DNA of 40,795 bases. Source: Macrostomum lignano. Taxonomy: Eukaryota. Below the pieces are notes generated by a model. The model was not told where the DNA came from. It worked only from the letters and a program-made list of their open reading frames with translations, and made no database searches. The stretch lies in assembly GCA_002269645.1 (NCBI GenBank), contig NIVC01004603.1:1-40795 (forward strand). Direction: 5' to 3'. The position numbers and the translations under genes were made by a program. Below, piece by piece: positions 9,752-40,795 of the stretch. Position 1 is the stretch's first letter. Each line of letters starts with the position of its first letter.

Positions 9752-11010
9752 TCAGTCAACGTCATCTTCAAACGCCACAGTGTACGCGTCTACCCGGCAG
9801 TCGTGGCCGCCGGGCACCTCAGCAGCAGCAGCAGCGCGCGGGACCCTTTGCTGACTAGACGCACCGCTGCAGGCCGTTGGCCTGTCAAGCCGCCGCCACC
9901 GCTGGCCGCGGTCAACACCGCGTTCGCTGCACGAGTGCAAGCGACGGCCAGGCCCATGCTGCCCGCTCGGTACACCAGCACGTGACCCGTCCCGATGTCC
10001 GTGACGTACAGCTGGTCAAAACGCTCATCCAGATGAAGACCGCACGGCGACTGACCAGCCGGGTAGCTGAGGTGGCAGAGCGGTTCCAGGGTCAGCCAGT
10101 CGAACTTCACCACGCGGCGGGTCTCGGGAAACGAGACCCACAGGCAGGTCAGGCGGTGGCCGGGCACGGCGAGGTAGTAGGGCACGCCGAACCTGGCAAC
10201 GTCGATGCTGCGAATCCGCTTCAGTGCCGGCGCCGGCGTGTAGTGGTCCACGGTCAGTTGGCGCGGGTTCGTCACCCAGCACTCGCCACGGAAGTTGACT
10301 CGCACGGCGAACATACCCGGTCTGGACGGATGCGCCGTCGCTCCTCCGTCACTTCGTTGCCGACGAGTTGAAGCCTCCAGCCGGGAGGCGGCCAGCCGGC
10401 CAGCCCTATCGAAGACGAAGAGACCGCAGCGGCCGGAGGTGCTAATAGCGGTGAGGTAGATGAGGCCCGGAGTCGCATCGATGCACAGTGGCGCGCGGTG
10501 GCCCAGGCTGGCTGGCCAGCTACTGGCGTCGCCCTGCGTCCGGCAAGGCTGGGCCAGGGAGAACTCGGCGACGTCCAGGCCAGGGACCAGCAGGCGGTCG
10601 GTTTGAACGGCAAAATCGTAGGGGCTGGTCCAGGCGTTGAGCCGGACGGAGGTGAAGGCTGAGGCGCTGCGGAGTTTCCGGCCCGGTGGTGGCAGCGGGC
10701 AGATGTCGTAGGCGCCCGGTGAGCCGCTGCCGTCCGCGACGTCTTCATCTGTGCCTTCGTTGTCGCTGCGCTTTCGCAACGGCGAGTTCTGACGTCGACG
10801 GTCGCGGCTGCGGCTTCGACTGCGACTGCGCGCAAACAGCCGTCGGCGCAGCTTGATCCGCTTGAAGAAGCTGACAATGGCTGGCTGCTTCTTGCCTTTC
10901 TTCTGCTGCTGATGCATTGGGTCTTCTGCAGCCGGCTTGATTGGCACCTCATCGTCGCTGGCCGGTTTTATCTCGCGCTCCTTTCCTCGCGAGCGTCGCA
11001 GCTTTAACAT
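9752..11010 (-). CDS. Basic/RS-rich N-terminus plus NHL/SMP-30-like beta-propeller protein, with a probable frameshift near 9810
   Basis: 406-aa ORF with RSRSRSRSRD and blade-like motifs (PGLIYLTA, GLFVFDRAG, GECWVTN, SPCGLHLDERFDQLYVTDIGTGHVLVY). A more plausible C-terminus, EVPGGHDCRVDAYTVAFEDDVD*, lies in the adjacent frame and ends at 9752. Confidence 0.65.
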
Positions 11011-14102: not shown

Positions 14103-17100
14103 ATGCGAACTATTGCGACTGCACTTGGTCTTTGCGTCATTATGATGCTTCTTTTTAGTAGTTTTCATACTGGTGCATCGGCCAAAGGACCCAAAGTAAC
14201 TGACAAGGTAACAATATATAAACAAAAAAGTACTTAAATTTTATACGTGTCATAATAGTATATACAAGGACCACTGGGTTCACAAAGTTAAGTCAATGAT
14301 TGATGATAGCATGGTTGTTTACCTGTTTAGTTGCTTAATAATATAAATGTATTTAGATTAAAAGAATATTGTTTAAATAAAAGTAGGCACTCAATAAATA
14401 GGCCCCTAATAACATGTTATAGGCTAGAGCTGTCAAAATTAGAGATTTTATTCGAGACGAGATTCGAGACGAGAAAGGCTTATAAGTCGAGAATTTCGAG
14501 ACGAGACAAGACAAAGTAAATCTAAAAAATATATTTCAGAATTGCATCTTGTCTTGCTTTTATCTTGCCTTATCTTGTCTTAAATTTCTTGATAAAATAC
14601 AATTCTAAAAAAATATTTTTTAGATTTTCCAGAATACTTTCTTAATTCTAGTTTTAATTCTTTGCTATTTATTCATAAGAATTTATGCTTGTAGCATATA
14701 AGCCCTTGGCCCTACTATGTCTATTACTAATTTGTCAAAAGACCTGTGTAGATTATCTTCAAGTCTGCTATGATACACCTTGCTGCAGAACTGAAATGAT
14801 AACTAAAAGAGCACATATGCAATGCAAACTCGTATATAACAACGTTCGTTAAATAACTGCTCAACATTGGCTAGATTTTACCATTTGAAAATTGCCCTAT
14901 CAAGCGTGTTACAACAAACAGTTGTATTTATATGAAAATTTGCTCCCCTTTTTATATTTTATCACTTAAAAGCTTTTGAAAAAAGGTATCGGAAAAATTC
15001 TTGAATCTCGTCTTGAATTTCTTGACAAAATTCGAGATTTCTCGAGACGAGAAAAAATGTCGAGATCTTGTCTCAAATCTTGTCTCGTCGAGATCTCGTG
15101 ACAGCTCTATTATAGGCCTAGTTTCTCCCTAAAATATATTGTTTCTTACTAAGCTTAATAAGGTTACTTAAAAATGATTATCTTCTATAAAAATATTTTA
15201 TTCATGCAAAACTATAGTTTGCCAAATATGTTATTGTCTTCTAAAAGCAGTAGAGAAAAATTTTTCCAAGGACCTAAGAGATAAATAAACAGCTAAAGAC
15301 CAAAGTTTGCCTATGCATGCCAATGCATTTGCCAATAGAATAGGCTTTTACCAATTATTAAATTTGGTATTCTTATTTTTTTATTATATAATAGCTCAAG
15401 ACTAAAGTTTACAAAAACCTATTGCATATATTTTTTACATTGTTTAGTTATCAAATAAAGCTATTTTGAATCCTAAGAATGATGGAAATTTATCTTTATT
15501 TCTAGGTTTATATATAAATAGTTTTGGGGATTAGAATTTATTGGGCTCAAAATCTATTGGTTTCAACCTCTTATAATAAAAGTTATAAGTGGTAAATCTA
15601 GGATTTTTAAAGTAAGGGGGCAATCCTAGGCAGAATGGCCCAACTTTTTGGGTTGGCCTAAAATAAGCTTTAAATAAGCCAAATGTTGCAATACTCCCCC
15701 CTTATATACAAGTTCAGCCATGGCAAAAGAGGAGGGTGACTGCCCCCTTCTCCTGCCCCCCTTCTGGATCTGCCACTGAGTTTTAATTTATATATTGTCA
15801 AACAACTTTATTTAGGCCTAACAAATTTCTAATAGCAATAAACATACTTATATCTATTTAACAATCTTAACTTACATTAGGTTATGTAAGGACAATAAAA
15901 CATTTTTTATATAATATAAAAGTAATAGTTTGTGTCCAAGTCTAATATTTTTTAATATATAGCTAATAGTATTTTAGTTTTTGACTAGGCTTATAATGGG
16001 GCCATTCTACCATTAGACTTGGACAAGGCTATACGAGTGTATTTATAGCTATAGTCATAGTTGCAGTGGAACATTAACTATTATAGTACTTTAAGTATAA
16101 GTTTATAGATATTTTAGCTAGATTTTCTGTGTAGTTATTTTATGATCAAGAATAAAATCATCTAGGTAAATAGCCTATATCTAGCACCCATAATTGGCTT
16201 AGGATTGCCATGTATTCACATATAAGGGCCAACCCCTATGGCATAGAAAGTGTATATGCATGACAATTTGAAATTTAAGGCTGCTTTAGTGCTATACAGC
16301 TTGTGTATAGGCCAGGAGTCAATGGAATAGGCAGAAAGCTTTGCCATCTAATCCTGCTTTAGCTCTCATTAAATTTTCAAATACTGGTGTGAGTGCACTG
16401 TGTGGCTTGCTAATTTTGTAATGAAATCAGGAGTTGAAAAGCCTCTATCCAGCTTTTGGGTCCTTTGAAACTTTACAATAGCAGTCTGGCCTGTTTGAGG
16501 TCTCTTCTCAACTCTCTTACCTCCTGTTCCTTCCCTCTCCTTTCCTCTCTCATCTGGCCCGCAGCCATTAGCTAGGTTCTTTATCTGGCTTTTGAGAAAA
16601 GTTTGCCGGACCCTGATCTAAATAAACCTTCGCTCCCAGGTGTTCTTCGACATCACCATCGGTGGGAAGCCAGCTGGCCGCATCGTCATCGGCCTGTTTG
16701 GCGGCAGCGTGCCAAACACTGTGAAGAATTTCAAGTCGCTGGCGGAGGGCGTGCCCCAGGAGTCTGGCGGCAGCATGGGCTACAAGGGGTCCAAGTTTCA
16801 CCGCGTCATCAAGGGCTTCATGATTCAGGGCGGCGATTTCACTAAAGGCGACGGCACCGGAGGCAAGTCCATCTATGGCGAGAAGTTCAAGGACGAGAAC
16901 TTCAAGCTGAAGCATTACGGCGCCGGCTGGTGCTCCATGGCCAACGCTGGCCCGGACACAAATGGCAGCCAGTTCTTCATCACCGTGGCGAAGACCCAGT
17001 GGCTGGACGGCCGGCACGTTGTATTCGGCAAAGTGCTAGAGGGGATGAGCGTGGTGAGGACGATCGAGACCACCCCAACTAACCAGAATGACCGGCCATC

Positions 17101-17179
17101 CCAGGATGTGGTCATCGCCGACTGCGGCTCGCTGCCTGTTGACCAGCCGTTCGCTGTTGAGAAGGCGCCGTCTGATTAG
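14103..17179 (+). CDS. PPIB: Cyclophilin B (ER peptidyl-prolyl cis-trans isomerase), 2 exons (14103-14207, 16640-17179), 214 aa
   Basis: Signal peptide plus KGPKVTDK|gtaac, then a phase-0 join to cccag|VFFDITIGG. Canonical cyclophilin motifs [38 protein letters not shown] and [12 protein letters not shown]. Confidence 0.95.
14425..15109. mobile_element. hAT-type MITE in the PPIB intron
   Basis: 11-bp TIR TAGAGCTGTCA...TGACAGCTCTA. Exact 8-bp TSD TTATAGGC at 14417-14424 and 15110-15117. Subterminal CGAGACGAGA repeats. Confidence 0.88.
15587..15778. mobile_element. Small decayed MITE of the CAGTGGCGGATC type
   Basis: The right end GGATCTGCCACTG pairs with a degenerate left end AAGTGGTAAATCTAGG. 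C-rich/G-rich subterminal tracts. No clean TSD. Confidence 0.4.
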
Positions 17180-17976: not shown

Positions 17977-19254
17977 GGAGAGGCAGATTCTCAGGCACTG
18001 AGGGGGAGCGGAGAGGCAGACTCTCAAGCACTGAGGGAGAGTGGAAAGGCAGATTCTCAGGCACTGAGGGAGAGCGGAAAGGCAGATTCTCAGGCACTGA
18101 GGGAGAAGCAGATTCTCAAGCACTGATGGAGAGGCAGATTCTCAAGCACTGAGGGAGAGCGGAGAGGCAGATTCTCAGGCACTGAGGGAGAGCGGAGAAG
18201 CAGATTCTCAGGCACTGAGGGAGAGCGAAGAGGCAGATTCTCAGGCACTGAGGGAGAGCGAAGAGGCAGATTCTCAGGCACTGAGGGAGAGCGGAAAGGC
18301 AGATTCTCAGGCACTGAGGGAGAAGCAGATTCTCAAGCACTGATGGAGAGGCAGATTCTCAAGCACTGAGGGAGAGCGGAGAGGCAGATTCTCAGGCACT
18401 GAGGGAGAGCGGAGAAGCAGATTCTCAGGCACTGAGGGAGAGCGAAGAGGCAGATTCTCAGGCACTGAGGGAGAGCGAAGAGGCAGATTCTCAGGCACTG
18501 AGGGAGAGCGGAAAGGCAGATTCTCAGGCACTGAGGGAGAAGCAGATTCTCAAGCACTGATGGAGAGGCAGATTCTCAAGCACTGAGGGAGAGCGGAGAG
18601 GCAGATTCTCAGGCACTGAGGGAGAGCGGAGAAGCAGATTCTCAGGCACTGAGGGAGAGCGAAGAGGCAGATTCTCAGGCACTGAGGGAGAGCGAAGAGG
18701 CAGATTCTCAAGCACTGAGGGAGAGCGGAGAGGCAGATTCTCAGGCACTAAGGGAGAGCGGAGAGGCAGATTCTCAGGCACTGAGGGAGAGGCAGATTCT
18801 CAAGCACTGAGGGAGAGCAGAGGCAGATTCTCAAGCACTGAGGGAGAGCAGAGGCAGATTCTCAAGCACTGAGGGAGAGCAGAGGCAGATTCTCAAGCAC
18901 TGAGGGAGAGCGGAGAGGCAGATTCTCAAGCACTGAGGGAGAGCAGAGGCAGATTCTCAGGCACTGAGGGAGAGGCAGATTCTCAAGCACTGATGGAGAG
19001 CGGAGAGGCAGATTCTCAAGCACTGAGGGAGAGCAGAGCAGATTCTCAAGCAATGAGGGAGAGCGGAGAGGCAGATTCTCAAGCACTGAGGGAGAGCGGA
19101 GAGGCAGGTTCTCAAGCACTGAGGGAGAGCGGAGAGGCAGGTTCTCAGGCACTAAGGGAGAGCGAAGAGGCAGATTTTCAGGCACTGAGGGAGAGCGGAG
19201 AGGCAGATTTTCAGGCACTGAGGGAGAGCGGAGAGGCAGACTCTCAAGCACTGA
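17977..19254. repeat. Minisatellite, ~33-bp unit GGCAGATTCTCA(G/A)GCACTGAGGGAGAGCGGAGA, with a 217-bp higher-order repeat
   Basis: Visible tandem array. The same translated blocks recur in the ORF track at 18090/18307/18524 and 18116/18333, a 217-bp period. Confidence 0.97.
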
Positions 19255-19748: not shown

Positions 19749-20039
19749 CTAGAAGCAACTGCTACACCTGCTTTTTGCACGAGTTCTTTGACTGACAGGA
19801 CTAGAAAAACATTTCTCGGAAATAAAACAATATTTTCCAATCAAAGCCACTCGCTATGCTTTCCCTTTCAGTGCTGTGGTTATACAAGTATGCATTGCAC
19901 ACTTTTTAAGGGCTATAGAGGGTTACTGGATCGTTCTGAATTGACCAAATGTGCCTCTAAATCACCGGAATAAAACAGCATGTGCATTGGATTTTAAAAT
20001 GCGAAATGTTAACGCCTAAAGTGAAGTACAGCACTCATC

Positions 20040-20850
20040 CTCAGTTGCTGGTTAAACCTCCAAAATCCTCAGTTGCTGAGCCAGCCTCCCAGATCCTAGG
20101 TTGCTGAGCCAGCCTCCCAAATCCCCAGTTGCTGGAACAGCCTCCCAGATCCTCAGTTGCTGGGCCAGCCTCCCAGATTCTCAGTTGCTGGGCCAGCCTC
20201 CCAGATTCTCAGTTGCTGGGCCAGCCTCCCAGATCCTCAGTTGCTGGGCCAACCTCCCAGATCCTCAGTTGCTGGGCCAGCCTTCCAGAAGGTCAGTTGC
20301 TGGGCCAGCCTCTCAGATTCCCAGTTGCTGGGCCAACCTCCCAGAGTGTCAGTTGCTGGGCCAGCCTCCCAGAGTGTCAGTTGCTGGGCCAGCCTCCCAG
20401 ATCTTCAGTTGCTGGGCCAGCCTCCCAGAGTGTCAGTTGTTGGGCCAGCCTCCCAGGATGTCAGTTGCTGGGCCAGCCTCCCAGATCCCCAGTTGCTGGG
20501 CCAGCCTCTCAGATCCTCACTTGTTGGGCCATGCAACCTCCCAGATTCCCAGTTGCTGGGCCAGCCTCCCAGATCCCCTGTTGCTGGGCCAGCCTCCCAG
20601 ATTCTCAGTTGCTGGGCCAGCCTCCCAGAGTGTCAGTTGCTGGGCCAACCCCCCAGATCCTCAGTTGCTGGGCCAGCCTTCCAGAAGGTCAGTTGCTGGG
20701 CCAGCCTTCCAGAAGGTCAGTTGCTGGGCCAGCCTCCCAGATCCCCAACTGCTGGGCCGGCCTTCCAGATCCCCAGTTGCTGGGCCAGCCTCCCAGATCC
20801 CCAGTTGCTGGGCCACAGCCGCTAACTCTCAGATCCTCGATCAGTTACTG
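20040..20850. repeat. Minisatellite, 28-bp unit CAGTTGCTGGGCCAGCCTCCCAGATCCT
   Basis: Visible tandem array. All three + frames are open only because the unit lacks stop codons. Confidence 0.97.
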
Positions 20851-22396
20851 AACCTTCACCTTTCACACCCTTTCCAAATTTCTGATAGTTAAAAATTGGA
20901 AGGCCGATTTGATTGGAAAAACTCTCAAGATTCGATGTTTTTTTAATTAAAGTGGACAAGATTTTAACTCAAGCTGCGCCAAATGCATGGCTACCCGCTT
21001 TTTTGCTGTTCAGAAGACCAGCGAGTCTGAAAGTTTTCTCTGCACTAAGAGTAATATTGGCCTTTAAGTCTAGCACTACTACTAAACTATATTTCTGGAT
21101 CGTGCATTAAATGACCCCAGCCAATACGCGATCACAAGCCGTTTAAGCACGGTTTTAGGGTTTGATGCAGGGATGCAGAATCGTGTTTAATTGAAAAGCA
21201 AGTCTCCCACTAACGATAAAATTGCTCCTGACCAGGCTCAATTGGCTTTTTTGTTTCCAGCCAGCTCTCTGCACTCTCATTTACTCCACCCACCAATTAG
21301 CTTCAAAACTGAGTGTACAGCAATTAGCTGTACTGAGTGTACACTGGCCAAGTGCATTGGACAGACAAGTCTTGCTATGAAGTACAAGGTACGAGCGTAA
21401 TAAGCTACAAGGTACTAAAACCCAATGTACATAGCAGGCAGATATTTTGATACTAAAAGCTGCAGTTCTTCCCTCATTCTATAGTTTTCATTTCTATTGC
21501 AAACTAAACTGAAAATTGGCAGAATTCATTCTGCGATATTTTTTTTCTACGTCGTAAGAAGTATGCCGGATCCGTTGGTAAGTTGATAATTAAATGGATA
21601 TTAAATGGATATTGCACTGGTTTTAGTATGGAGTGGATCAATCACTCGCATGGATGGAGGCATATCATATTTTTGGGTCTCATTTCTGTGGCTCTTGTCT
21701 ATATATTGATGAGCCGATCGACTGACTTTTCGTGATGATTCGATCACGGAGATGTTACACTTGCAGAAAATGGTGTTATAAAGTGGAGAATTTCGAGTAA
21801 GAATCTTCCGAATGTTTTGGGATCGCGCTCTGAGGATTTGAATAAAATTTTAAGTCCACCTATTTTTCAAGATTCGCTGAGTCAATTTATAGTTCGGCTG
21901 ATCTCAAAGAGCCAGCAGAGATTGCTATGAGGCGATGGGGTGAAGGGATAGCCAAGTTTCTTGCTTGATTTTTACAAGGGTTTATTTCTAGTATTTTCCC
22001 CAAAGTCTTTCGCATTGAATATATTTCCTTAGCACACTACTGCTCCCAATTGGTTGAGACTCAGACCGAATCTCCTGCTGGTTAGAGCACTCGCATTGGT
22101 TGGTATAGCATTCAGAGCTAGAGGGATTACATGATCACTCAATCGGATGCAAATGCAGGCACATGTCATGAGAGAGATTCATGCATCTAGAGTACGTAGG
22201 TCCTCACTCTCGTCGTTAGGCATCGCACACATTCCATAGCTTCGAGTTTGACTACCCATGGGTGGGAATGGCACCTGTTTATAGGTGTTAACCCAGGGGA
22301 TTTTGTATCAGTCCGGATCTCAGAAAACTGCTGCATACCTGTGATACAGATGCCCTATTATTAACCACGTGTTTAAAAAACCCCTATTTGCTTCAG

Positions 22397-23761
22397 TCCC
22401 AGACCAGCGAGATCGCAGAGAAGCTGAAGGAGGGAAACTACGGTCTGCTGTTGGATCTCGTAGCCAAGGAGGACCTGACCCCGTCAGACTGCAGGGCGGT
22501 CCTGGCTGAATGCGCCGGGACTCCCGGCGGTCTGCGCGCGAACTGCGCCAAGAGCTTCGAGCTGCTGATTGACCGGTCAGCTTGCGAGCTTCACAGTGCC
22601 GATGAGAACGGGGACAGCCTCGCCCATCTGGCCGCCCGGCATGACAACTTGATGTTGCTGGCTCTGCTCCCGGCTGAAATCAAATTCCAGACCAACAACA
22701 AGGGACTCACGCCATTTATGGAGGCCGCCCAATCCGGGAAGACCCGCTGCGCGAAGCACTTGATGCACCTGTTCAGGCAGACACACCTGGCCAGCAACTG
22801 GCAGGCAGTTCTGTGCAAAAATAACTCGGAAGGTCGGACGGCGCTGGACATGGCTGAGGAGTGCGGCTGGCACGAGTTGGCCAAGATAATTGAGGCGTGA
22901 GTGAGGCAGTATATAATATAAAGAATCCGATTTTTAAATGTTAAAACAGTTTGATAAATACTTGTACACCGATCATTTTAGTGAACTGAAGTTACTTGAG
23001 AACGGCCTGACGCCCCAGGTGAGTGTTCAAAAACTTGCTTGCAGATTAATTTAGCATCCTTAGACTAATGAACAGCTATAGTTTGTACTTTTAAAAATCG
23101 TGGTGCCAAGCGGACACGTCAAAATGTCAATTTGGGAGTTGCCATTAATTGTCATTACACACTTGCGTGACAATGACGATTCGAGGCACATGCGAGCGTA
23201 AACATGATCTTGTGTGCTCAGTGCTTGAGCCTGTGGCAAGCGTCTAAAGTCCTTAATCCCCAATAATTGTCTAAATATACGTACCTTCCAGCAAGAGCGA
23301 ATTCGCATACAGCTGGAGCAGCTCGCCCTTGCTGGCAATCTCGCCGAGCTCAAGCTGCTGGCCACCAGCGCCAACTGCGACTTGCCCGACGGTGCCGGCA
23401 AGACTGCGCTGATGCGAGTCTCCGAGTGCAAGTCAGCCGGCCTTGAGGTGCTGAAGCTCCTGGCAGGTCTTGGCGACCCCACGGCGCCTGACGCCAACGG
23501 CTGGAGCAGTCTGCACTCGGCCGCCGCAGCCGGCTGGGAGGGCGCCATGTGGGCGCTCGCCAACTCCGGGGCGGCCGTGAACTGCGGCGACCACCGCAAC
23601 TGGACGGCCCTCATGCAGGCGGCCAGCCGCGACCACGTGGACAGCGTCAGGGCGCTGCTTCGGCTTGGCGCCAACTGGGAGATGCGAGACAACAACGGGA
23701 GCACCGCGCTGTACTATGCTGATAGGAACTGCTGCAAGCAGACCTCCGAACTGCTGGGCCA
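22397..23761 (+). CDS. Ankyrin-repeat exons (about 8 repeats in two blocks)
   Basis: DENGDSLAHLAA, NNKGLTPFMEAA, NSEGRTALDMA, DGAGKTALM, DANGWSSLHSAA, DHRNWTALMQAA, DNNGSTALYYA. Confidence 0.9.
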
Positions 23762-26700
23762 GTGAGAACTCTCTATTTGTTATCTTGTTGTGTGCTGCAA
23801 TTTTTCTATTTTACTACAACACCTAGACTCGCTAAATGACGCCCCAAGGTTCGCGGATAAATCATTCTTCAAGGAGAAACTGCGAGTTCACCCGTGAGAA
23901 ATTTGCTCTTTGATCTGTTACAAGCCATTACGAGCCACGATGCTGTTTTCACGGATGATGAAATGCCCTCTTTTTCAGGCTTCTGGCTAGCGCAGACTCT
24001 GCAACTCTGCCTACAATGAGGTCTTTTAACAACCGTCCGACTCTGCCGGTTCGTGCTCCAGGTAACAGCGGTATTAAGCAGCAAGAAGGCTCAAGGCTTG
24101 ATCTGAACAGCAAGCTGGATGCACTTAATGCAGCTGCTGCAATGCAAGCAAAAGAGACGCCGGTGGCAGCTGGTGAAGTAGCAATGGAAACAGAAGCAGC
24201 AAAACCAACGGAGAGTAGCACGGTTCCGAAAGTGGAATGGTGAGTTGCATTGCAGATGGTTTTTTAAAATTTGTTAGTCATTTCTAACTTAACCGAAATC
24301 AGTTTGTTTGGTGTTTAGTTGGTGACAGAAGACCCTCAGCCAGCGAACTGGAAGATCAAATTGCTTTTCATACCCTGAGCATTGAGCTTACACACAATAC
24401 ACAATGAGCTTACCCTTGCAGCAAGTCCGTCATGAAGAGCATCAAATTCGGCGAAGAGATCGGTCGGGGCGCATTCGGAACTGTTTGCCGGGCCACTCTG
24501 CCGAACAGCCCGACCGAGTACTGCGCCAAGTTCATTAACTTGCCCTTCCACGACACAGACGGAAAGGACGTCAGAAATCACAAAGTCGCAGACAATATCA
24601 AGGCTGAACTGAATCTGTGCGGACTGAAACACGAAAACATTGCAAAATTTGTTGAAATATGCTACAATGCCGATAGCCTGCAGATCACTGTTGTGATGGA
24701 GCGCGTCTACGGTAAAACGCTGAATAATTTTCTTAATGGAGAACCTGTTCAAATCGAAGTGAACCGAAAGCTAACAACCCAGGTGAGACTTGCCTAGATT
24801 TGAAAGTTAGAGAAGAATTTCATTTTAAACTCTCAAGTGGAAACCCTGCTTACAGATCTGCAGCGCTCTACAGTATATGCACAGCATGGGTGTTGTTCAC
24901 CGGGACATCAACGGCAACAACATCCTTATAGATAGAAATAAATTGGTGAAACTTATCGACTTTGGTCTGTCTCGCAGGCTGTGCGAATCCGACACGCACT
25001 GCCTGGAGAGCAGCACGATGCCGAAAGGGACTCTCCATTTCCTGGCTCCGGAGAGATTCGGCGGAGACGACCAGGAAGGCGGCAGCTCCGGTCGAATCTG
25101 CCCCAAAACGGACATCTGGGCCCTCGGTTGCATCGTGTACTACATGGCGAATGGCAGAGTGCCGTATGACAACATAAAAAGCTTCGTGCATCTTGGCAGC
25201 AAAATTTCAACGTTCGGCGCTCCTTCACTGGCGAGTTCACCGGAGACATGCGACATCAAAATGATAGATTTTTACGGCTGCTGTACAGACAAGAATTACA
25301 AAACTCGAAAGTCGTCAGCTGAGCTGCTTAAGCATCCATTTATCGTGTGCAGTGAGTGCAGATTAAGTTGTTGGATCAATTTAAATATTTTAGTATATAC
25401 TAGGTTTAGTATAGCAAACGTTTAGTTCACTAAGGGGATGGGGGGAGTAGCAAAGCGCTAAAACGCGTCATGCCTGATGACGAGTGTCCGGGCCGTTGAA
25501 AGCTCTCAGGGTGTACTTGCGTGTATTAAGATCTACTTTATCCTAATTTGCGGTTGTACTCAAAGTTTCTCTTGCGATCGCAGACTATTAAACTCATACT
25601 CATCAGTAGCTGTATACTAGCTGATTATAGTTTAGGCCCTACTTCTCGTACAGATATTAATTGGGAATCTGCATGATGACAATAGACAATCATTTCATCC
25701 AAGTGAAATAAAAACATTTTAGATTCTGACCATTTGGCCGTAAAAAGTCAGAATAGCAACGACGATGACAATGAGAAAGGCAGCGGTCCAGATGGAGGCG
25801 ATTGCAAGCGCAGGCCAAATGCAGGCCACGGAGATGGCACAAATGATCCCAGAGGAGCCGATTCTAATAACGGAGGCGGTCCAGGCGGGCCAAGTGGCAG
25901 CTCTGAAGGCAGCATATTGAATAACCCCGGAGCCGTTGCGTCTCAGAGGTTGGTCCCTGACTGACTAAAAGTATATTTGCACGCCTATGCAGAAGCTGAA
26001 AAATGGGGAAAGAAAATTCCCTAAGAAACTGATGCTTTTCCCAGCCCCAATGACCTATGCAGATTTTAAAAACAGTGTCAGACAAATCTAATCGCCTTGT
26101 CCAAAAATAATAGAATGGAAAATTGAAATTATGTGTTCTCAGCTGCATGTTCAGTATTAGATTCGTCAGTTGCGCCATTGCAAGTAGTGAAAACAATTGC
26201 GTAACAAGAGCAGGCATCAATTGCAAAGTTTAGAGCATAAATTTAAGGGCGTCATAAAATGCTGTACATTATTAGATAGAAATTTTGGCAGACAACTCAA
26301 ATGTACATATTTATTGAGATCTATTGTGATTAAGGGATTGAGAAACAATGAACAGACTATGTACATTCATAAAGTAGAACATGCCTCTTATCACAAGTTT
26401 GCTAACACGCAGACTTCCTTTGAAAATAAAGTTGCAGTCAATTGAAACAATTACCCTCAGTACTCAAATCAGTTCTCTGGCCTCGCGATGCCAAACTTTC
26501 GACGCACACATGAAGAGAATCGTATCTGGTGCTGCATCCTCTGCTTCCGCAAAGCCGATCGCGTTATTTCAGCTGCTCAGGCAGAACTCATCGAGCAATT
26601 TATCCTGCCAGAATTCTGTCATGCCTACATCCGTAATACTCTGCCAGGAGGCATGTGCAGCTGCTGCAGCAAGAAATTGCAGTCACAGACGTCACCTGTA

Positions 26701-29700
26701 CCGCAAGAACTGCCTGCTCGACTGCCATACCTTCAAATTGTTGCAGATTTGGAGGTTTTGCCACAACTCACACGTGAGCATCCGCACTGCTCCTGCTGTA
26801 TCTGCCAGGTAGTTTCCAGCCCATCAAACAAGCGGGTGGCGGTCTGGCACCCATACATGTCTGACAGCAGCCGGGCCAACCATAAATTGCCCCAAGGACG
26901 ACCTGCAGAAACAACTCGAAGCCAGGACAGAGACTCGGAGAAGCGCTGCACTAGGTGCCACTCACTTGTGGGCAAAGGCCTAAGGCACGAGTGCAGCGTC
27001 TCCAGCAAGTTGCAGTACCTGCGCACGCTCAGCCCTACATCAAAAGAGCACATCGCTCATGACGTGATGCGTGAAAAGCTAAGAGCAGCAGCAGCATCAG
27101 GACATGGATCAACGGCTTCTATTTCCAGCGCCACCGGTGGCCCACCAATGCAGCTGAGGCATGCAAGTGATTCAAATGAGCAGAGAGCGCTGAGGACCGA
27201 GACACTAGTAACGTTAAAGACATCTCTCAATCTGAGTGACCGGCAGACAAACATGGCAGCCACAATTATCAGGCAGGCGGAGGGCAGTCGTAAGGCCGTG
27301 CAACCCGGACTGCGGGCAGCTCTGGCAGCCGCAGGCAGCATCGCGGAGAGTTTTTTTGAGATGCGGCAGCTCAAATTCACTCAAAAGTCCTCAGGTGGCA
27401 GCTTTACTGATACCACAAGATGTTCCGTCATATGCCCCGATCTGCAGGGCCTGCTGAGCTTCATTTGCTCAAAGCGAGGATTTAGTGAGTTCGATGTGAG
27501 ATTGAAGCTGGGGATGGACGGAGGTGGTGGCTCGCTAAAAATCTGCCTTAGTGTCGCCCCAGTACTGCCTACCGAACCACAGGCAGAGTCCACACCTAAG
27601 AAGCTGAGCAGGGAGTCGCGAATAAGCAACTTTGGCGTAAAAAAACTGTTTATCATCGCGATTGCTGAGGATGTCCAGGAGAACTATGCAAATGTGCGAG
27701 CACTTCTAGATGAGCTAGACTTGACATCGATTAAGTTCACAGTCGCTTGCGACTTCAAGCTAGCCAACATCCTGTGTGGCCTTCAAAGTCATGCCGCAGC
27801 TCATCCTTGTCTCTACTGTGAGGGGCAGGCGCCGTGGCAAGTTGCCGGTTCCATAAGAACCCTTGGATCCATTCGTCGGATGGCCACGGCATTCGAGGCT
27901 GCTGGTAGCTGCCAGCGACTGGCAAGAAACTACGCAAGCTGTGTCAGACAGCCTCTTCTCCCTGGGGCTGATTCTACGCCAATGCTGGACCTCGTGCCAC
28001 CACCAGAGCTGCACATCATGCTTGGTGTGACCAACAAACTGCTCGATCAGCTGAACTCAGCTTGGGGCGACGACAAGGCATACAAGTGGGCGCATTCAGC
28101 TGGAATCTGTCGCGAGCAGTACCACGGCGGGTGTCTGGAAGGCCCTGCGTGTGTCAGATTGCTGCTTAAAGCTCAAGAGCTCAAGAGCAACCTGCCATCA
28201 AGGCTCCAGGGCTATGCGTCTGCTCTCATGGCATTCGATGCTGTTCGCCAAGCATGCTTTGGGCAACAGCTGATGAGCGACTTTTGCCAGAAGATTGCCC
28301 AGCTGGAATCCTGCTGCGCTGAACTGAAGCTGGTGCCGACACCTAAGATGCACGCCCTTTTCCACCATGTTCCGGAGTTCTGCGAGCGATTCAACTCAGG
28401 CCTTGGGACCTTCAGTGAGCAGGCAGTCGAGTCTGCACACAGCGACTTTCGTTCGACGTGGCAGCGGTTTCGCAGGCCTCTGGGGCATGTGCAGTATGCA
28501 GAATGCCTGCTGCGCGCAGTTGTTAGCTACAATTCCAGCCATATTTGATGTCAAGCATTTTCATGCCTGCAAAGATTTCTAGGATTTAGCTTGTGTACTT
28601 AATATCCATGCACACTTTATTCCATACGGACATTAGCAATAATAAGTGCATGGTTCTCATTTTATAATATTAATACTAATACAGTTGCACGTTCCTTTAA
28701 TGATTAAAATTAATATTAAAACTACGAACTTATATTAACATTAATATTATCGATGGGTTTCGCCTTAAATACCTATCATATTACATGTAATTTGCATATA
28801 ATATAAAAAATTCATATTACCATTTTTGACAAGGCGATTAGATTTGTCTGACACTGTTTTTGAAATCTGCATAGGTCATTGGGGCTGGGAAAAGCATCAG
28901 TTTCTTTGGGAATTTTCTTTCCCCATTTTTCAGCTTCTGCATAGGCGTGTTTGATTTATTTGCATCACCAGTATAACAAATCGCTATTGCAGAACCGCTG
29001 AAGACGACGACCGATACCCAGTGACGTCTCCGCGACGGGGTGTTTGTCTAATAATCAACGTTGAAAAGTATGACAGGAGGTCACTCCTCGAGGATCGGGA
29101 AGGATCTCGCTTGGACGTAGATAGGCTATCAACACTGTTCTCAAAGATGGCTTTTGATGTCCAGTTGGCGCAAAATCCAACTAGTCAGGAGATGCCGGAA
29201 CAAGTTCACGCGGCTTCAGTTGAATTTGGCCGTTCCAACCTCGGCTGCTTTGTGTGCGTCATCATGGCTCACGGCTCTAGTGGGGAAGTCTATGGAAGTG
29301 ATGGAGAATCCGTAGGCTTAGAATCAATTATGCGGCCTCTGTACCCTGTTCACTGCACCAGTCTGCTCAACAAGCCAAAGATTTTCATTATTCAAGCGTG
29401 TCGTGGATTGAAAGCTGACGAGTCGCGCTTTTCACCAAATCGCGCGGAAGATTCCAGATTCAGCCCTTATAAAAAAGATTTTCTGGTCTGCCATTCAAGC
29501 ACTAAGGGCGAAACAGCCCATCGGGATCGGTATAATGGCTCACTGTTCGTACAGACATTCTGCGACGTCATTTGTGACCGGTTTCGTCACGATCATCTGA
29601 CGGACATTATGGCCAATGTAAACTGCCGACTAATGAAGGCTCAATCTTCAGCTCGGCATGGGTTCGATGATATTGTTGTATCCGAGTACTGCTCGACCCT

Positions 29701-29764
29701 GACAAAGAAGTGCTACCTGGATATAGTAACAGATGTAAGGGTTAATACTGAGGAGGACATGTAG
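22397..29764 (+). CDS. Predicted ankyrin-repeat / Ser-Thr kinase / caspase fusion protein; exons 22397-22896, 22982-23018, 23292-23761, 23979-24239, 24422-24782, 24856-25351, 25723-25948, 28972-29764; start exon not found
   Basis: All 7 introns are GT-AG and phase-compatible (2,0,2,2,0,1,2). The exons sum to 3144 nt, i.e. 1047 aa plus stop. The last junction uses donor GTTGGT (25949) and acceptor CACCAG (28971), giving ...ASQS-ITNRYC...DRYPVTSPRRGVCLIIN. Confidence 0.68.
24422..25351 (+). CDS. Ser/Thr protein kinase domain (STE11/MAP3K-like motifs), split by a 73-nt intron (24783-24855)
   Basis: IGRGAFGTV, CAKF (beta-3 Lys), KAEL (alphaC Glu), HRDINGNNIL, DFG, GTLHFLAPE, DIWALGC, LLKHPF. Confidence 0.93.
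25980..28949 (+). mobile_element. Full-length Chapaev-type (Transib/RAG1-related) DNA transposon, 2970 bp
   Basis: 122-bp TIRs (25980-26101, 28828-28949) with 2 mismatches. 5'-CAC...GTG-3' termini. 4-bp TSD TTTG (25976-25979, 28950-28953). One intact transposase ORF. Confidence 0.9.
26488..28548 (+). CDS. Chapaev/RAG1-like DDE transposase, 686 aa
   Basis: N-terminal H-x7-C-x2-C...P-x3-C-x2-C Chapa-type zinc finger. Putative catalytic triad in GMDGGG / ACDFK / SEQAVES. Zinc motifs CLYC and HALFHH. PPELHIMLG. These parallel the RAG1 core (GYDEK, CTLC, HKTLAH, SEGNES). Confidence 0.9.
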   Translation: MPNFRRTHEENRIWCCILCFRKADRVISAAQAELIEQFILPEFCHAYIRNTLPGGMCSCCSKKLQSQTSPVPQELPARLPYLQIVADLEVLPQLTREHPHCSCCICQVVSSPSNKRVAVWHPYMSDSSRANHKLPQGRPAETTRSQDRDSEKRCTRCHSLVGKGLRHECSVSSKLQYLRTLSPTSKEHIAHDVMREKLRAAAASGHGSTASISSATGGPPMQLRHASDSNEQRALRTETLVTLKTSLNLSDRQTNMAATIIRQAEGSRKAVQPGLRAALAAAGSIAESFFEMRQLKFTQKSSGGSFTDTTRCSVICPDLQGLLSFICSKRGFSEFDVRLKLGMDGGGGSLKICLSVAPVLPTEPQAESTPKKLSRESRISNFGVKKLFIIAIAEDVQENYANVRALLDELDLTSIKFTVACDFKLANILCGLQSHAAAHPCLYCEGQAPWQVAGSIRTLGSIRRMATAFEAAGSCQRLARNYASCVRQPLLPGADSTPMLDLVPPPELHIMLGVTNKLLDQLNSAWGDDKAYKWAHSAGICREQYHGGCLEGPACVRLLLKAQELKSNLPSRLQGYASALMAFDAVRQACFGQQLMSDFCQKIAQLESCCAELKLVPTPKMHALFHHVPEFCERFNSGLGTFSEQAVESAHSDFRSTWQRFRRPLGHVQYAECLLRAVVSYNSSHI
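28972..29764 (+). CDS. Caspase (peptidase C14A) domain on a terminal exon
   Basis: YPVTSPRRGVCLIIN, REGS, catalytic MAHG and QACRG, and small subunit DFLVCHSSTKG...HRDRYNGSLFVQTFC. There is an in-frame stop at 28952 and no ATG before the fold begins, so an upstream exon is required. Confidence 0.93.
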
Positions 29765-30644
29765 GACCTGAAAGTGTCTCATTTGTAGCTTCTACTAAAA
29801 TTTGGAACCATAAATTTGGGAAACGATGAATTTTTTGTTCTGCCAGTTTTTCATTAGATTTGCATTATACATCGACTGATAACGCGTCATACAGTGTATC
29901 TGTCATCGACGTCGAACGTCGGCCAGACTTGCATGTATTGACAGTTCAGGTGCTGTGGCTTATATCAGAAGACCTTTGCTATAGTGGCAATCTAGAATTA
30001 ATTTCGCAAAGGAGACTGTCAGGCCTCAGAAAATTACTACTTAAAATTACTAATTATTTTCTAATCGGACATTTTGTCCGCCATCTGTTTACTCCATCTG
30101 ATCTACCCGCTATTTTACGCCTAAGAAACTATGTTTGCGATAGTTTAATTTGCATGCTAAATTTGTTATTTTGTGTTTTAGGTTAAGTTCTCTGTAGATC
30201 CACGTTCGTCTAAGTCTTTAAATTGTAATATTTTACTACGAGCAATATACTGTAGGTTTGATATCGAACACAAATTGCAACTATACTGCAGACAAGTTGA
30301 CAAATAAAATGAAATCTGCCAATTCGAACATGCAAAGTGTACAAGCCATTGTGAGTTATTACCCCCTTGTAACTTCGTTTATCCAGGCGAGTGGCTTGTT
30401 GTACAAGAAGTACAAGAAACCGTGAATTTTACGTATTTAATTGCCCCAGGGTGAAAGGACTCTTATCGAGCTTGTGTCGAGTGTTAACTACTCCACACTT
30501 TAGGAGCAACTCTATGGCCCAAACCCGGGGGACCAGGCCGCTACGATCTTATGATCTGAAAGCAGCTAGCTACATAAAATACTCTCATCGCTGCATTAGT
30601 TGAACGAGAACTCAAGCCAGCGTGCTCAACTTGCTGCCGTCATC

Positions 30645-30974
30645 ATGTCCTCATCTGACCGTAACATCGACCGGAAATGCGACGAAGTTCGCAGTAAAAT
30701 CGAAGCCAAGCTGCAGGCCTCCGGCGAGCAGGACCGGATCCGGCGCCACATCCGGGCGGCTCTGAACAGCTCGGGCTGGATGGACGAAGTGAAAAGCCAG
30801 TGCCGAGATCTCATCCGGGCCAAGGGGGTCGAGTACTGCACTGTGGAGGAAATTGTTGAGGCGGTGCTGCCGCAGGCCAGAGAGCGGGTGCCGAAGGAGC
30901 TCAAGCAGGAGGTACTGGACCTGCTATGGAAGTTTGTCGACACGCACGACATTGGACTGGGAGATGACTGCTGA
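30645..30974 (+). CDS. ENY2: ENY2/Sus1 (SAGA DUB module / TREX-2 subunit), 109 aa, intronless
   Basis: IEAKLQASGEQDRIRRHIRAALNSSGWMDEVKSQCRDLIRAKG...TVEEIVEAVLPQARERVPKELKQEVL matches the ENY2 pattern I recall (KLIETGERERLK...GWKDQLK...TVDDLV...VPDSVKKELL). Confidence 0.88.
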   Translation: MSSSDRNIDRKCDEVRSKIEAKLQASGEQDRIRRHIRAALNSSGWMDEVKSQCRDLIRAKGVEYCTVEEIVEAVLPQARERVPKELKQEVLDLLWKFVDTHDIGLGDDC

Positions 30975-36813: not shown

Positions 36814-36975
36814 GGCCTGGTGATTCCGAAGGTTGCGCGTGTATGTGACCATAGGTCTGTTTAAAATAATTGCAAGTGTCAGTGAACTTCGCCCATTCGT
36901 CTGACCGATCGCTTTGTTTTAAAAAAATTGATGGTATTTCGCTCTCCAGCCCACACAGCTTCACCCTCGGCAGTG

Positions 36976-37800
36976 ATGGCCGCTGCCACCAGCGCCAGCG
37001 TCCTTGGCGAATCGCCTCCGGTCACGCCGCCGCCTCCGCCGCTGTTGCCGCAGGCGCCGCCATTGGCGCTAACTGTGCCGGACGAGTTCCGGCGCGGTTT
37101 CGGCGTCTTCCAGCAGCGCCACCTGCTTGGCAAGGCGGCGTCGGCACCGTCGTCAGCGGCGGACAGAGGCGGCGCCCGGATCGGCCCGAGGCGCGCCCGG
37201 TTCCGCGCCCGCCTGGGCCAGGAGCTCATCGAGGCCGTCAATCGGCGCCACTCAACGGCGCGTGTTCGGCGCCTACTCGAAGCCGGGGCGCCGCCGAATG
37301 TTGCGGATAAAAAAGGTCGAACACCGTTGCACATCGCCTCGGCTAGGGGCGACAGTGAGTTAGTGGACTGTCTGCTCGCCTGCGGTGCCGATCCCAGCCG
37401 AGTGGACTGCGTTGGCAACACGCCAGCCAGGCTGGCGGCCGTCACAGGCCGGCTGGACCTCGTCGGCCGCTACCTGGCCGCCGGCGCCACCCAAGCGGAC
37501 CTGGGCCGCAGTCCCGTGGCTCTGGCCAGGGACGGCCTGGCCCGGGCTAAGCGAGCTTTCACCCTGTCCGGAGACACCGCCTCGCTGCTGCAGGCCTACA
37601 GGGACGCCCGGTCGCTGCTGCGCACCTGCCTGACAATCCAGGAGCGACAGTCGCCGCCGACGCCTCCACGGCGAGTGGCTTCTGCGTCGGCCCCAGAAAC
37701 CCCAACTGCCGCGCCGGCAGCTTCGTCGACTGAACCGGCCGACGCTGAGGCTGAAGAAGTAGACAGCCTGCTGCTGCGGCTGGAGGGTGTTCGATTCTGA
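36976..37800 (+). CDS. ANKRD54: Ankyrin-repeat protein, ANKRD54-like, 274 aa, intronless
   Basis: LLEAGAPPNVADKKGRTPLHIASARG, GADPSRVDCVGNTPARLAA, GRSPVALAR and C-terminal EVDSLLLRL resemble ANKRD54 as I recall it (GADPCAADDKGRTALHFAS...EVTDLLASF). Confidence 0.75.
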   Translation: MAAATSASVLGESPPVTPPPPPLLPQAPPLALTVPDEFRRGFGVFQQRHLLGKAASAPSSAADRGGARIGPRRARFRARLGQELIEAVNRRHSTARVRRLLEAGAPPNVADKKGRTPLHIASARGDSELVDCLLACGADPSRVDCVGNTPARLAAVTGRLDLVGRYLAAGATQADLGRSPVALARDGLARAKRAFTLSGDTASLLQAYRDARSLLRTCLTIQERQSPPTPPRRVASASAPETPTAAPAASSTEPADAEAEEVDSLLLRLEGVRF

Positions 37801-38609: not shown

Positions 38610-39662
38610 CTGGGAGATTCCCTATAGAGTTTTGTAGCAGATTCCCCATAGGGTTGTGAGGGAGATTCCCTGTATGGTTGTGAGGGAGATTCCCTGTATG
38701 GTTGTGAGGGAGATTCCCCATAGGGTTGTGATGGAGATTCCCTGTAGGGTTGTGATGGAGATTCCCTGTATGGTTGTGAGGGAGATTCCCTGTATGGTTG
38801 TGAGGGAGATTCCCCATAGGGTTGTGAGGGAGATTCCCCATAGGGTTTTGTGGGAAATTTTCCATAGGGTTTTGTGGGAGATTCCCCATAGGGTTGTGAT
38901 GGAGATTCCCCTAGTGTTGTGATGGAGATTCCCCTAGGGTTGTGATGGAGATTCCCCTAGGGTTGTGATGGAGATTCCCCTAGGGTTGTGATGGAGATTC
39001 CCCATAGGGTTGTGATGGAGATTCCCATAGGGTTGTGATGGAGATTCCCATAGGGTTGTGAGGAGATTCCCTGTAGGGTTGTGAGGGAGATTCCCTGTAT
39101 GGTTGTGAGGAGATTCCCCTAGGGTTGTGATGGAGATTCCCCATAGGGTTGTGATGGAGATTCCCCATAGGGTTGTGAGGAGATTCCCATGGTTGTGATG
39201 GAGATTCCCCTAGGGTTGTGATGGAGATTCCCCATAGGGTTGTGATGGAGATTCCCCATAGGGTTGTGATGGAGATTCCCCATAGGGTTGTGATGGAGAT
39301 TCCCCTAGGGTTGTGATGGAGATTCCCCATAGGGTTGTGATGGAGATTCCCATAGGGTTGTGATGGAGATTCCCCGTAGGGTTGTGAGGGAGATTCCCTA
39401 GGGTTGTGATGGAGATTCCCCAGGGTTGTGATGGAGATTCCCATAGGGTTGTGATGGAGATTCCCCATAGGGTTGTGATGGATATTCCCCATAGGGTTGT
39501 GATGGAGATTCCCATAGGGTTGTGATGGATATTCCCCATAGGGTTGTGATGGAGATTCCCCATAGGGTTGTGATGGATATTCCCCATAGGGTTGTGATGG
39601 AGATTCCCCATAGGGTTGTGATGGATATTCCCCATAGGGTTGTGATGGAGATTCCCCCTAGG
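38610..39662. repeat. Minisatellite, 22-24-bp unit AGGGTTGTGATGGAGATTCCCCAT
   Basis: Visible tandem array. The overlapping ORFs are repeat artefacts. Confidence 0.97.
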
Positions 39663-39735
39663 GCTATACCGCGCCATTGGCTATATACCGTAGATGCCTA
39701 CTTTCAGTAGTTTACTTACCGAAAGTCTTTAATGC

Positions 39736-40222: not shown

Positions 40223-40367
40223 GTGAGCCTTGCTCGTCACACTTCCGGTTACATGTGCCTCGCTTCCAAAGTAAAGTAAAGGGTTTCCTTTGTTTCACTT
40301 TAGCCGTAGGTTACCTAAGATTTTACTTGCCAGCACCCCACTTTCGAATGCCTAACACCACCGGTTG

Positions 40368-40795
40368 TCTCACACTCCACCTCCGGTTGCCCCCACTCCA
40401 CCTCCGGTTGCCCCACACTCCACCTCCGGTTGCCTCACACTCCACCTCCGGTTGCCTCACACTCCACCTCCGGTTGCCCCACACACCACCTCCGGTTGCC
40501 TCACACTCTACTTCGGTTGCCCCACACACCACCTCCGGTTGCCCCACACTCCACTTCCGGTTGCCTCACACTCACTTCCGGTTGCCCCACACTACTCCGG
40601 TTGCCCACCACCACCTCCGGTTGCCCCACACTCCACCTCCGGTTGCCCCACACTCCATTCCCGTTGCCCCACACTCCACTTCCTGGTTGCCTCACACACT
40701 CCACACATTTGTCTTCACTTCCGGTTTGCCCCACACTCCACTTCCGGTTGCCCTCACATCCCCTCCTGGTTGCTTCACGTTATACTTCCGGTTGC
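40368..40795. repeat. Intronic minisatellite, 21-22-bp unit CTCCACCTCCGGTTGCCCCACA
   Basis: Visible tandem array running to the window end. Confidence 0.95.

Follow-up and report, generated by a model that had tools for sequence, protein, structure and literature searches.

A ten-exon gene of the flatworm Macrostomum lignano encodes an ankyrin-kinase-caspase protein

Introduction

In well-studied animals, death-fold domains of the CARD and DED type recruit initiator caspases, and RIPK1-type kinases exert their regulation as separate proteins. Ankyrin repeats and a kinase share one chain in RIPK4 and ANKK1, in which the kinase precedes the ankyrin repeats. Here we analyse a stretch of 40,795 nucleotides from the flatworm Macrostomum lignano (assembly GCA_002269645.1, contig NIVC01004603.1, positions 1 to 40,795 of the forward strand; hereafter the window), which contains a gene, BOX15_Mlig018903g3, whose reading frame runs through an ankyrin prodomain, a protein kinase domain and a caspase domain.

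The closest described proteins come from a survey of caspases in 60 lophotrochozoan genomes (Krasovec et al. 2024, Genome Biol Evol evae204, PMC11463336). Its available text reports a kinase-caspase in M. lignano and another in the earthworm Eisenia andrei, and defines a clade of caspases with an ankyrin prodomain (ANK caspases), the Schistosoma report of which is credited there to Lee et al. 2014; ANK caspases are described as confined to parasitic flatworms, with no other unusual prodomains in flatworms. The M. lignano kinase-caspase of that survey is of the same species and architecture class as the protein of the window but, in the portion of the text available, it is covered by one sentence that gives no function and makes no mention of ankyrin repeats in the chain. 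Nor does that portion carry an accession to tell which protein is meant, M. lignano holding at least two kinase-caspase families (that of the window and that of the proteins P0149/P0153, described below). An earlier reading of the window from its letters alone (the preliminary description) knew of no described animal kinase-caspase fusion, a belief that the survey renders out of date. In GenBank, PAA47029.1, PAA50850.1 and PAA59155.1 are of the same architecture class, and the window encodes the first of these exactly. The protein is already known in this sense, being deposited in GenBank and belonging to a caspase class published in 2024; a literature search for 'Mlig018903' returned no match.

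Results and Discussion

The ankyrin, kinase and caspase exons form one ten-exon gene

The preliminary description had joined eight intervals into one frame, namely exons 2-4 and 6-9 of Table 1 followed by 28972-29764. Spliced, these intervals come to 3144 nt and reproduce the claimed open frame of 1047 aa with its stop at 29762-29764, all seven introns having GT-AG borders, and the resulting chain gave several Ank matches in Pfam together with Pkinase (E 2.4e-46) and Peptidase_C14 (E 2.4e-43). All eight blocks lie in the coding gene, but the eight-exon model had missed an ATG exon at 21563-21577 and a cassette exon at 23849-23893. The ten-exon splice of the window is identical at every residue to PAA47029.1 (1060 aa), annotated as hypothetical protein BOX15_Mlig018903g3 of Macrostomum lignano and carrying Ank, Pkinase and Peptidase_C14 domains; exon 1 is needed for this exact match. 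The region is a single ten-exon gene, BOX15_Mlig018903g3, encoding an ankyrin prodomain, a linker, a STE/TTK-like kinase, a disordered Gly/Asn/Asp-rich linker and a caspase.

Table 1. Features of the BOX15_Mlig018903g3 gene and of the transposon in its ninth intron (positions in the window)
Feature	Position	Strand	Description
Exon 1	21563-21577	+	ATG CCG GAT CCG TTG = MPDPL, then donor GTAAGT; found by pattern
Exon 2	22397-22896	+	First ankyrin-repeat block; alignable with the prodomains of ANK-caspases P0144 and P0186
Exon 3	22982-23018	+	37 nt, between the two ankyrin blocks
Exon 4	23292-23761	+	Second ankyrin-repeat block; strongest Pfam Ank_2/Ank stretches
Exon 5	23849-23893	+	45-nt in-frame cassette exon, FADKSFFKEKLRVHP
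Exon 6	23979-24239	+	Ala/Pro/Glu-rich linker from ankyrin repeats to kinase; no Pfam domain
Exon 7	24422-24782	+	Kinase N-lobe: GRGAFG glycine loop, CAK lysine; Pkinase match
Exon 8	24856-25351	+	Kinase C-lobe: HRD 24898-24906, catalytic-loop Lys to Asn 24910-12, then DFG, APE
Exon 9	25723-25948	+	Gly/Asn/Asp-rich linker; donor AG|GTTGGT at its end
Intron 9	25949-28992	+	3044 nt in the window; 70 nt in both paralogous loci
DNA transposon	25980-28949	+	2970 bp; inverted repeats 25980-26106 and 28823-28949
Inter-acceptor segment	28972-28992	+	21 nt between acceptors 28972 and 28993; best taken as intron
Exon 10	28993-29764	+	Entire caspase domain (p20 + p10); His codon 29270-72, QACRG Cys 29399-401, stop 29762-64

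Six deposited models could be compared with the gene, three from GenBank, all of one assembly, and three found only in UniProt (A0A1I8H...). All three GenBank models include the 45-nt cassette exon and all three UniProt-only models skip it, a difference that suggests either alternative splicing or a difference of annotation; its sequence is kept in the M. lignano ANK-caspase P0144 (FADKSFF versus FQGKDFF).

The caspase exon lacks a start codon of its own, in agreement with the preliminary description: an in-frame TGA stands at 28952-28954, and the first in-frame ATG, at 29147, lies 51 codons into the exon, beyond the first beta-strand (GVCLIINV) and the S1-pocket Arg of the caspase. If exon 9 is left unspliced, its frame ends at a stop at 25962-25964. 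For the junction between exon 9 and the caspase exon, 28972 had been the preferred acceptor, but all six deposited models join at 28993 (...ASQ|RTAEDDD). We rejected 28972 as the main acceptor, as it is used in no deposited model, yields, after removal of the transposon described below, an intron of 49 nt that is shorter than all others, and would make coding the 21 nt between the two acceptors, which vary between gene copies (two of the first three bases differ in copy g1). The remaining introns of the gene measure 73-819 nt (transposon excluded), a range into which 70 nt fits and from which 49 nt stands out.

Paralogous loci place the linker and caspase exons 70 nt apart

We compared the window copy, g3, with two paralogous loci of the same assembly, L001 (copy g2) and L002 (copy g1). 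The preliminary description had pointed to paralogous loci lacking the transposon as a check; both loci are empty, and the kinase-side and caspase exons lie 70 nt apart in each, with the gene spanning ~5.2 kb as against 8.2 kb in the window. In the BLAST alignments to L001 and L002, window positions 25979 and 28950 abut and overlap by exactly 4 bp, the empty site reading ...GTATATTTGAT(T/A)TATTTGCATCACCAG..., and once the transposon and one TTTG are taken out, the window is the same as L001 over the entire 70-nt intron. These empty sites show that the insertion is real, that TTTG is its target duplication and that the two exons formerly stood 70 nt apart. Excision of the transposon with one TTTG leaves 49 nt to acceptor 28972 or 70 nt to acceptor 28993, which bears out the earlier claim of a compact 49-nt intron with an alternative acceptor that also fits. 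In both L001 and L002, the linker exon on the kinase side and the caspase exon are only the 70-nt intron apart, a pre-insertion spacing too short to accommodate a promoter or a first exon of the caspase's own.

The exons of the three copies are 98.6-99.4% identical, and the whole 1060-codon frame is open in all three. Residues such as Asp88, Arg590, Lys698 and Gln864 of PAA47029.1 set copy g3 apart from the others. The overall ratio of non-synonymous to synonymous differences per site (pN/pS) is 0.30-0.44, but with 20-44 substitutions among the copies these ratios have low power, and we use them only to state that the frames are intact. In copy g1, two extra codons (Asp-Ser) stand near the C-terminus of the caspase, and this copy accounts for most non-synonymous differences within that domain.

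The kinase and caspase exons are probably joined in one transcript

The BOX15 gene set was built from Trinity transcripts and StringTie/TACO assemblies mapped to the genome; transcripts were divided at positions with spliced-leader or poly(A) reads, and open reading frames were then called on the resulting mRNAs (PMC5730564). This pipeline made no cut at the kinase/caspase junction in any of the three copies. Since the 70-nt intron is not a multiple of three and the 1060-aa frame needs its removal, the assembled transcripts must have been cis-spliced at this position.

A different reading of the same region would be an operon of two genes, an ankyrin-kinase gene ending at 25964 and a trans-spliced caspase gene, with the fused model representing an unprocessed precursor. 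M. lignano biology is hospitable to such an arrangement, given that ~30% of the genes in this species undergo trans-splicing and 15% are found in operons, whose spacers measure ~100 bp after repeat removal, that its 35-nt spliced leader ends in ATG (PMC8629364), and that precursors make up ~7% of assembled transcripts (PMC5730564). However, neither acceptor would put a leader ATG in frame: at 28993 it reads ATG AAC CGC TGA, and at 28972 it reads ATG TAT AAC ... TGA, running into the same TGA after ten codons, so the spliced leader cannot start the caspase frame and was ruled out as the source of its start codon. Translation from the first in-frame ATG would cost the protein 51 residues, among them those of the first beta-strand and the S1 Arg. 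The fused frame, moreover, requires the 70-nt intron to have been removed by cis-splicing, and a pipeline that cuts at observed leader sites made no cut here in the three copies. The 70-nt spacer contains neither AATAAA nor ATTAAA, and the stop at 25962-25964 in the window is AGA in copy g1 (L002 ~14376-14378) and is therefore not a conserved terminator. We consider the operon reading very improbable.

The claim of the preliminary description that ankyrin repeats, kinase and caspase belong to one polypeptide is upheld by the exact reproduction of PAA47029.1 and by the paralogous loci with only a 70-nt intron at the junction. A single chain is well supported for the gene family, and it is probable for the transposon-bearing copy g3.

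A recent transposon insertion is confined to copy g3

The element in intron 9 has terminal inverted repeats of 127 nt that are 98% complementary and begin with CACGCC, flanked by the TTTG target duplication at 25976-25979 and 28950-28953. It lies in the sense orientation relative to the gene and contains an intact frame of 686 aa (26488-28548), for which Pfam gave no match even at E <= 10 and solved structures gave nothing credible; no further copy of the element occurs in the window or in loci L001-L003. From its end sequence and 4-bp duplication, we take it tentatively to be of the CACTA/Mirage/Chapaev type, and it is apparently autonomous. The element entered the 70-nt intron between linker and caspase exons recently, and among the three copies it is confined to g3.

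The insertion raises the question of whether copy g3 still yields the full chain. Its transcripts might end or be mis-spliced within the transposon, or read through to the stop at 25962-25964, giving an ankyrin-kinase protein that ends ...ASQRLVPD and leaves the caspase exon unused. Such impairment would be in keeping with a sense-oriented element that has an intact 686-aa frame and polyadenylation-type signals (AATAAA at 26425, ATTAAA at 28703 and 28715), and with the growth of the intron from 70 to 3044 nt, which leaves the original CTGAC element ~3 kb from the acceptor. The g3 model itself could have arisen from reads of the other copies, RNA-seq mapping having tolerated up to 1000 multi-mapping positions (PMC5730564). 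By contrast, the donor and acceptor, together with the TATAAC element upstream of 28993, are unaffected by the insertion and match those of g2, introns of ~3 kb that contain transposons are usually spliced, and the g3 caspase exon is intact, with one non-synonymous and three synonymous changes relative to g2. This last point says little either way, because the insertion is young, as judged from inverted repeats that are 98% identical. On balance we find an impaired g3 unlikely, and a copy that still encodes the ankyrin-kinase-caspase chain remains the preferred reading.

The caspase domain retains its catalytic dyad and aspartate pocket

Peptidase_C14 covers profile positions 1-232 of 233, and the domain aligns over its full length with structures of caspase-3, -6 and -7 (E about 1e-28 to 3e-30). 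The His of MAHG and the Cys of QACRG align with the corresponding motifs of caspase-6 and caspase-3 and are invariant in all six models. In the alignment to caspase structures, the S1 pocket for Asp is present, formed by an Arg in p20, the Gln before the catalytic Cys and an Arg in p10, with REGS matching RRGT/RNGT, AHRD matching SHRE/SWRN, and QACRG between them. The catalytic dyad and the Asp pocket of the caspase are thus predicted to be intact. The 85-residue segment ahead of the caspase is rich in Gly, Asn, Asp, Ser and Pro and, by direct reading, ends in AEDDD|R, while the short linker between p20 and p10 contains KAD|E and AED|S.

The ankyrin region corresponds to an ANK-caspase prodomain

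Residues 56-345 are collinear with the prodomains of the M. lignano ANK-caspases P0144 and P0186 (38-39% identity, 135-161 bits), compared with at most 66 bits between the window ankyrin region and generic ankyrin proteins, and the alignment to P0144 extends into the cassette exon. On this match, the protein looks like an ANK-caspase with a kinase placed between prodomain and protease. Like the flatworm ANK caspases, it has an ankyrin prodomain, which is homologous, N-terminal to the caspase, but it differs in adding a kinase of 280 residues and two linkers between ankyrins and caspase. Our ANK-caspase comparisons cover the M. lignano proteins.

The kinase is closest to the STE group and TTK/Mps1

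The Pkinase match covers profile positions 3-263 of 263. Among solved structures, the best matches of the kinase were TTK/Mps1 (E 3e-25), followed by MAP2K4, PAK2/3, MAP3K2 and MAP2K5, and its best database matches outside Macrostomum were MAP3K19-like; no RIPK was found among the 31 solved-structure matches at E <= 1e-20. With TTK/Mps1 and the STE kinases (MAP3K19, MAP2K4, PAK) it shares, besides being their best match, a long insert between APE and the next helix, but identity is ~30-33% and it has an Asn in the catalytic loop and none of the TTK/STE accessory domains. By sequence the kinase thus appears closest to STE/TTK kinases rather than to RIP kinases, a likeness that does not establish family membership.

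The preliminary description had set the protein beside RIPK1/caspase-8 and RIPK4/ANKK1. As a statement of homology this framing does not hold, since the kinase is nearest to TTK/Mps1 and the STE group. The likeness to RIPK1/FADD/caspase-8 is one of functional analogy only, a kinase acting together with an initiator-type caspase, and that to RIPK4/ANKK1 is likewise by analogy only, ankyrin repeats and a kinase standing in one chain, which in the window protein come in the order ankyrin then kinase, the reverse of RIPK4/ANKK1. Measured as a candidate RIP kinase, the domain is not closest to RIPK/TKL, and neither the accompanying domains nor their order correspond; Pfam found no Death, CARD or DED domain in the window chain, no separate search for a RHIM having been made.

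The family invariably keeps the GRGAFG loop, the CAK Lys (the ATP-binding Lys479), the HRD Asp (Asp580), the Asn downstream of it, DFG and APE. The catalytic loop reads HRDINGNN, with Asn (Asn582) at the position usually held by Lys in Ser/Thr kinases, in all six models. Some active kinases, such as haspin, also lack the catalytic-loop Lys. The domain could accordingly be read as a pseudokinase that carries out no phosphorylation and, standing in for a death-fold prodomain, has dimerisation or docking as its sole role. The Asn at the loop Lys position in every model would fit this, as would the second M. lignano family described below, in which visibly degenerate kinases are joined to a caspase-like domain without its catalytic Cys. 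Set against it are the complete and invariant set of other kinase motifs, a kinase-segment pN/pS of 0.18-0.47 (from few substitutions) and the example of active kinases, such as haspin, without this Lys. We hold a pseudokinase to be a serious contender, if somewhat less probable than a kinase that has kept some activity.

The kinase-caspase fusion predates the split of two M. lignano families

Relatives were found by an exhaustive HMMER search with the caspase domain, followed by local domain mapping and Pfam. A word-indexed search with the caspase alone had returned seven distant caspases only, so that HMMER was needed to reach the M. lignano relatives, and a word-indexed search with the whole chain was swamped by generic ankyrin proteins and was uninformative about the architecture outside the cluster of the protein itself. 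M. lignano proteins account for nearly all of the closest single-domain caspase matches. They include Ras/Roc-GTPase-caspases (P0134/P0282, P0134 at 41% identity), an LRAT-domain-caspase (P0148), ANK-caspases (P0144, P0186, P0175, P0229 and P0263), a large ankyrin-repeat protein with a caspase domain (P0193, 2049 aa) and a second kinase-containing family with the order kinase, caspase-like domain, ANK, caspase (P0149, P0153 and P0289). M. lignano being a free-living species, these ANK-, Ras/Roc- and LRAT-caspases qualify what PMC11463336 states on flatworm prodomains.

The P0153/P0289 family is collinear with the kinase-linker-caspase part of the window protein (29% identity, 286 bits, 95% coverage). 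At locus L003 (NIVC01001268.1, 2887-7449), an intron in the kinase falls at the same position (..AKQ|ICSAL.. versus ..TTQ|ICSAL..), with whole-codon boundaries in both, and a separate linker exon is followed by a 77-nt intron before the caspase exon, as in the plan of the window gene. Because this exon plan is common to families that are 29% identical, the kinase-caspase junction predates their split and is not an accident of annotation. The fusion is old.

The deposited proteins PAA89054.1, A0A1I8GZ94 and PAA70070.1 have a related kinase (phmmer E 4e-44 to 6e-42) and share the collinear kinase-linker-caspase arrangement and its exon plan, but they differ from the window protein in having no N-terminal ankyrin region and in being followed by a second ANK-caspase unit. 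In this second family, the kinase-adjacent caspase-like domain is without the catalytic Cys (QAEKQ, QTHRD), the terminal caspase keeps it, and the kinase is degenerate (HRQINPST or HRDVNCRT, with glycine loops ARGAHSD and SRGEFGE). GenBank models of the family end after the pseudo-caspase (533-583 aa) and UniProt-only models span all four domains (~1080 aa), a discrepancy in length that leaves its gene boundary unsettled.

That the fusion might be an artefact of assembly or gene prediction deserved attention, as novel metazoan architectures are often prediction errors according to the available text of two reports (PMC3927609, PMC4967905), and the M. lignano genome is highly duplicated and rich in repeats. 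Yet the adjacency and the exon junctions are repeated on three separate contigs of one assembly, three UniProt-only entries have the same junction, and the second family has the same exon plan at 29% identity. These observations largely refute an artefact, which we judge the least credible of the alternatives.

A proposed mode of action for an ANK-caspase with an inserted kinase

Taking the gene structure and the domain comparisons together, the account that we favour, and regard as very likely as a whole, is that of a real ten-exon ANK-kinase-caspase gene of ANK-caspase origin whose product works in the manner of an initiator caspase. From the domain alignments, we infer that the protein is an ANK-caspase, from the flatworm branch beside the caspase-8-type initiators, with a kinase placed between prodomain and protease. 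In the large database search, the nearest named matches of the caspase outside Macrostomum were DED caspase-8-like proteins, and the published Bayesian tree, as described in the available text of PMC11463336, has the M. lignano kinase-caspase as sister to ANK caspases and next to DED caspases.

Several observations weigh against this account. Among solved structures, the caspase is nearest to the executioner caspases-6, -3 and -7. In our neighbour-joining tree, which serves as a consistency check only and has the schistosome sequences outside its set, a clade made up of M. lignano proteins alone (ANK-, Ras- and LRAT-caspases) stands beside the DED caspases with bootstrap values of only 23-60%. 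Given the executioner-like similarity and this weak support, it is chiefly the published tree that carries the initiator-type label. The collections searched yielded no orthologue from outside M. lignano, the Lys to Asn change in the catalytic loop may abolish kinase activity, the caspase-segment pN/pS against copy g1 is 0.99 (from few substitutions), and the g3 junction, given near-identical copies and multi-mapping, could rest solely on g1/g2 reads.

The sensor-kinase-executioner scenario of the preliminary description is putative. In our proposal, the protein would behave as a long-prodomain caspase of the initiator type, whose ankyrin repeats may recognise a ligand or partner and whose ankyrin-kinase module may bring two chains together, so that their caspase domains dimerise. 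Cleavage could then follow after Asp residues, at AEDDD|R of the acidic linker and at KAD|E and AED|S between p20 and p10, and would free and stabilise an active Asp-specific protease. The kinase would most likely be either a weak or regulatory enzyme acting in cis or a scaffold for dimerisation, and not a signalling kinase of the RIPK type.

A bolder version would see in these proteins a Macrostomum-specific, fast-diversifying set of caspase-8-like proteases in which the death-fold prodomain has been swapped for ankyrin, kinase, Ras-Roc or LRAT-NlpC modules, with an active kinase that gates the caspase in cis. We think this improbable; if true, it would mean a death or immune switch, self-contained and gated by phosphorylation, that flies, nematodes and vertebrates lack, and ANK caspases would be older than parasitism in flatworms.

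For the favoured ANK-caspase account, a single chain that combines ankyrin repeats, a kinase and an apparently intact caspase would let the hard-wiring of phosphorylation and proximity to a protease be tested directly, and the experiment is feasible in M. lignano, a regeneration model open to transgenesis and RNAi and one where cell death matters. The analysis also has corrective value, in that the fusion is real, old and already deposited and surveyed, its kinase is not RIPK-like, and the transposon that separates its exons in the window is copy-specific and recent.

Genomic neighbourhood

A scan of the window for bacterial promoters and terminators was disregarded as not meaningful for a flatworm gene. 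On the minus strand, a 406-aa ATG-initiated open reading frame at 9790-11010 lies in the most GC-rich stretch (65% GC) and has no Pfam match. Minisatellite arrays occupy 2961-5458, 17977-19254, 20037-20815, 38613-39663 and 40356-40704, with periods of 32, 33, 28, 24 and 22 nt and up to 82 copies, and some of them explain long spurious open reading frames and strong local GC/AT skew. Three genes on the plus strand accompany the ankyrin-kinase-caspase gene: a cyclophilin gene at 16640-17176 (Pro_isomerase, E 1e-50), an EnY2 homologue at 30600-30971, which follows the caspase stop by ~840 nt, and a gene for a small ankyrin-repeat protein at 36928-37797. At the g1 locus the cyclophilin gene is present and the contig ends before the other two neighbours, and at the g2 locus the gene calls place the cyclophilin, EnY2 and small ankyrin protein families in the same order.

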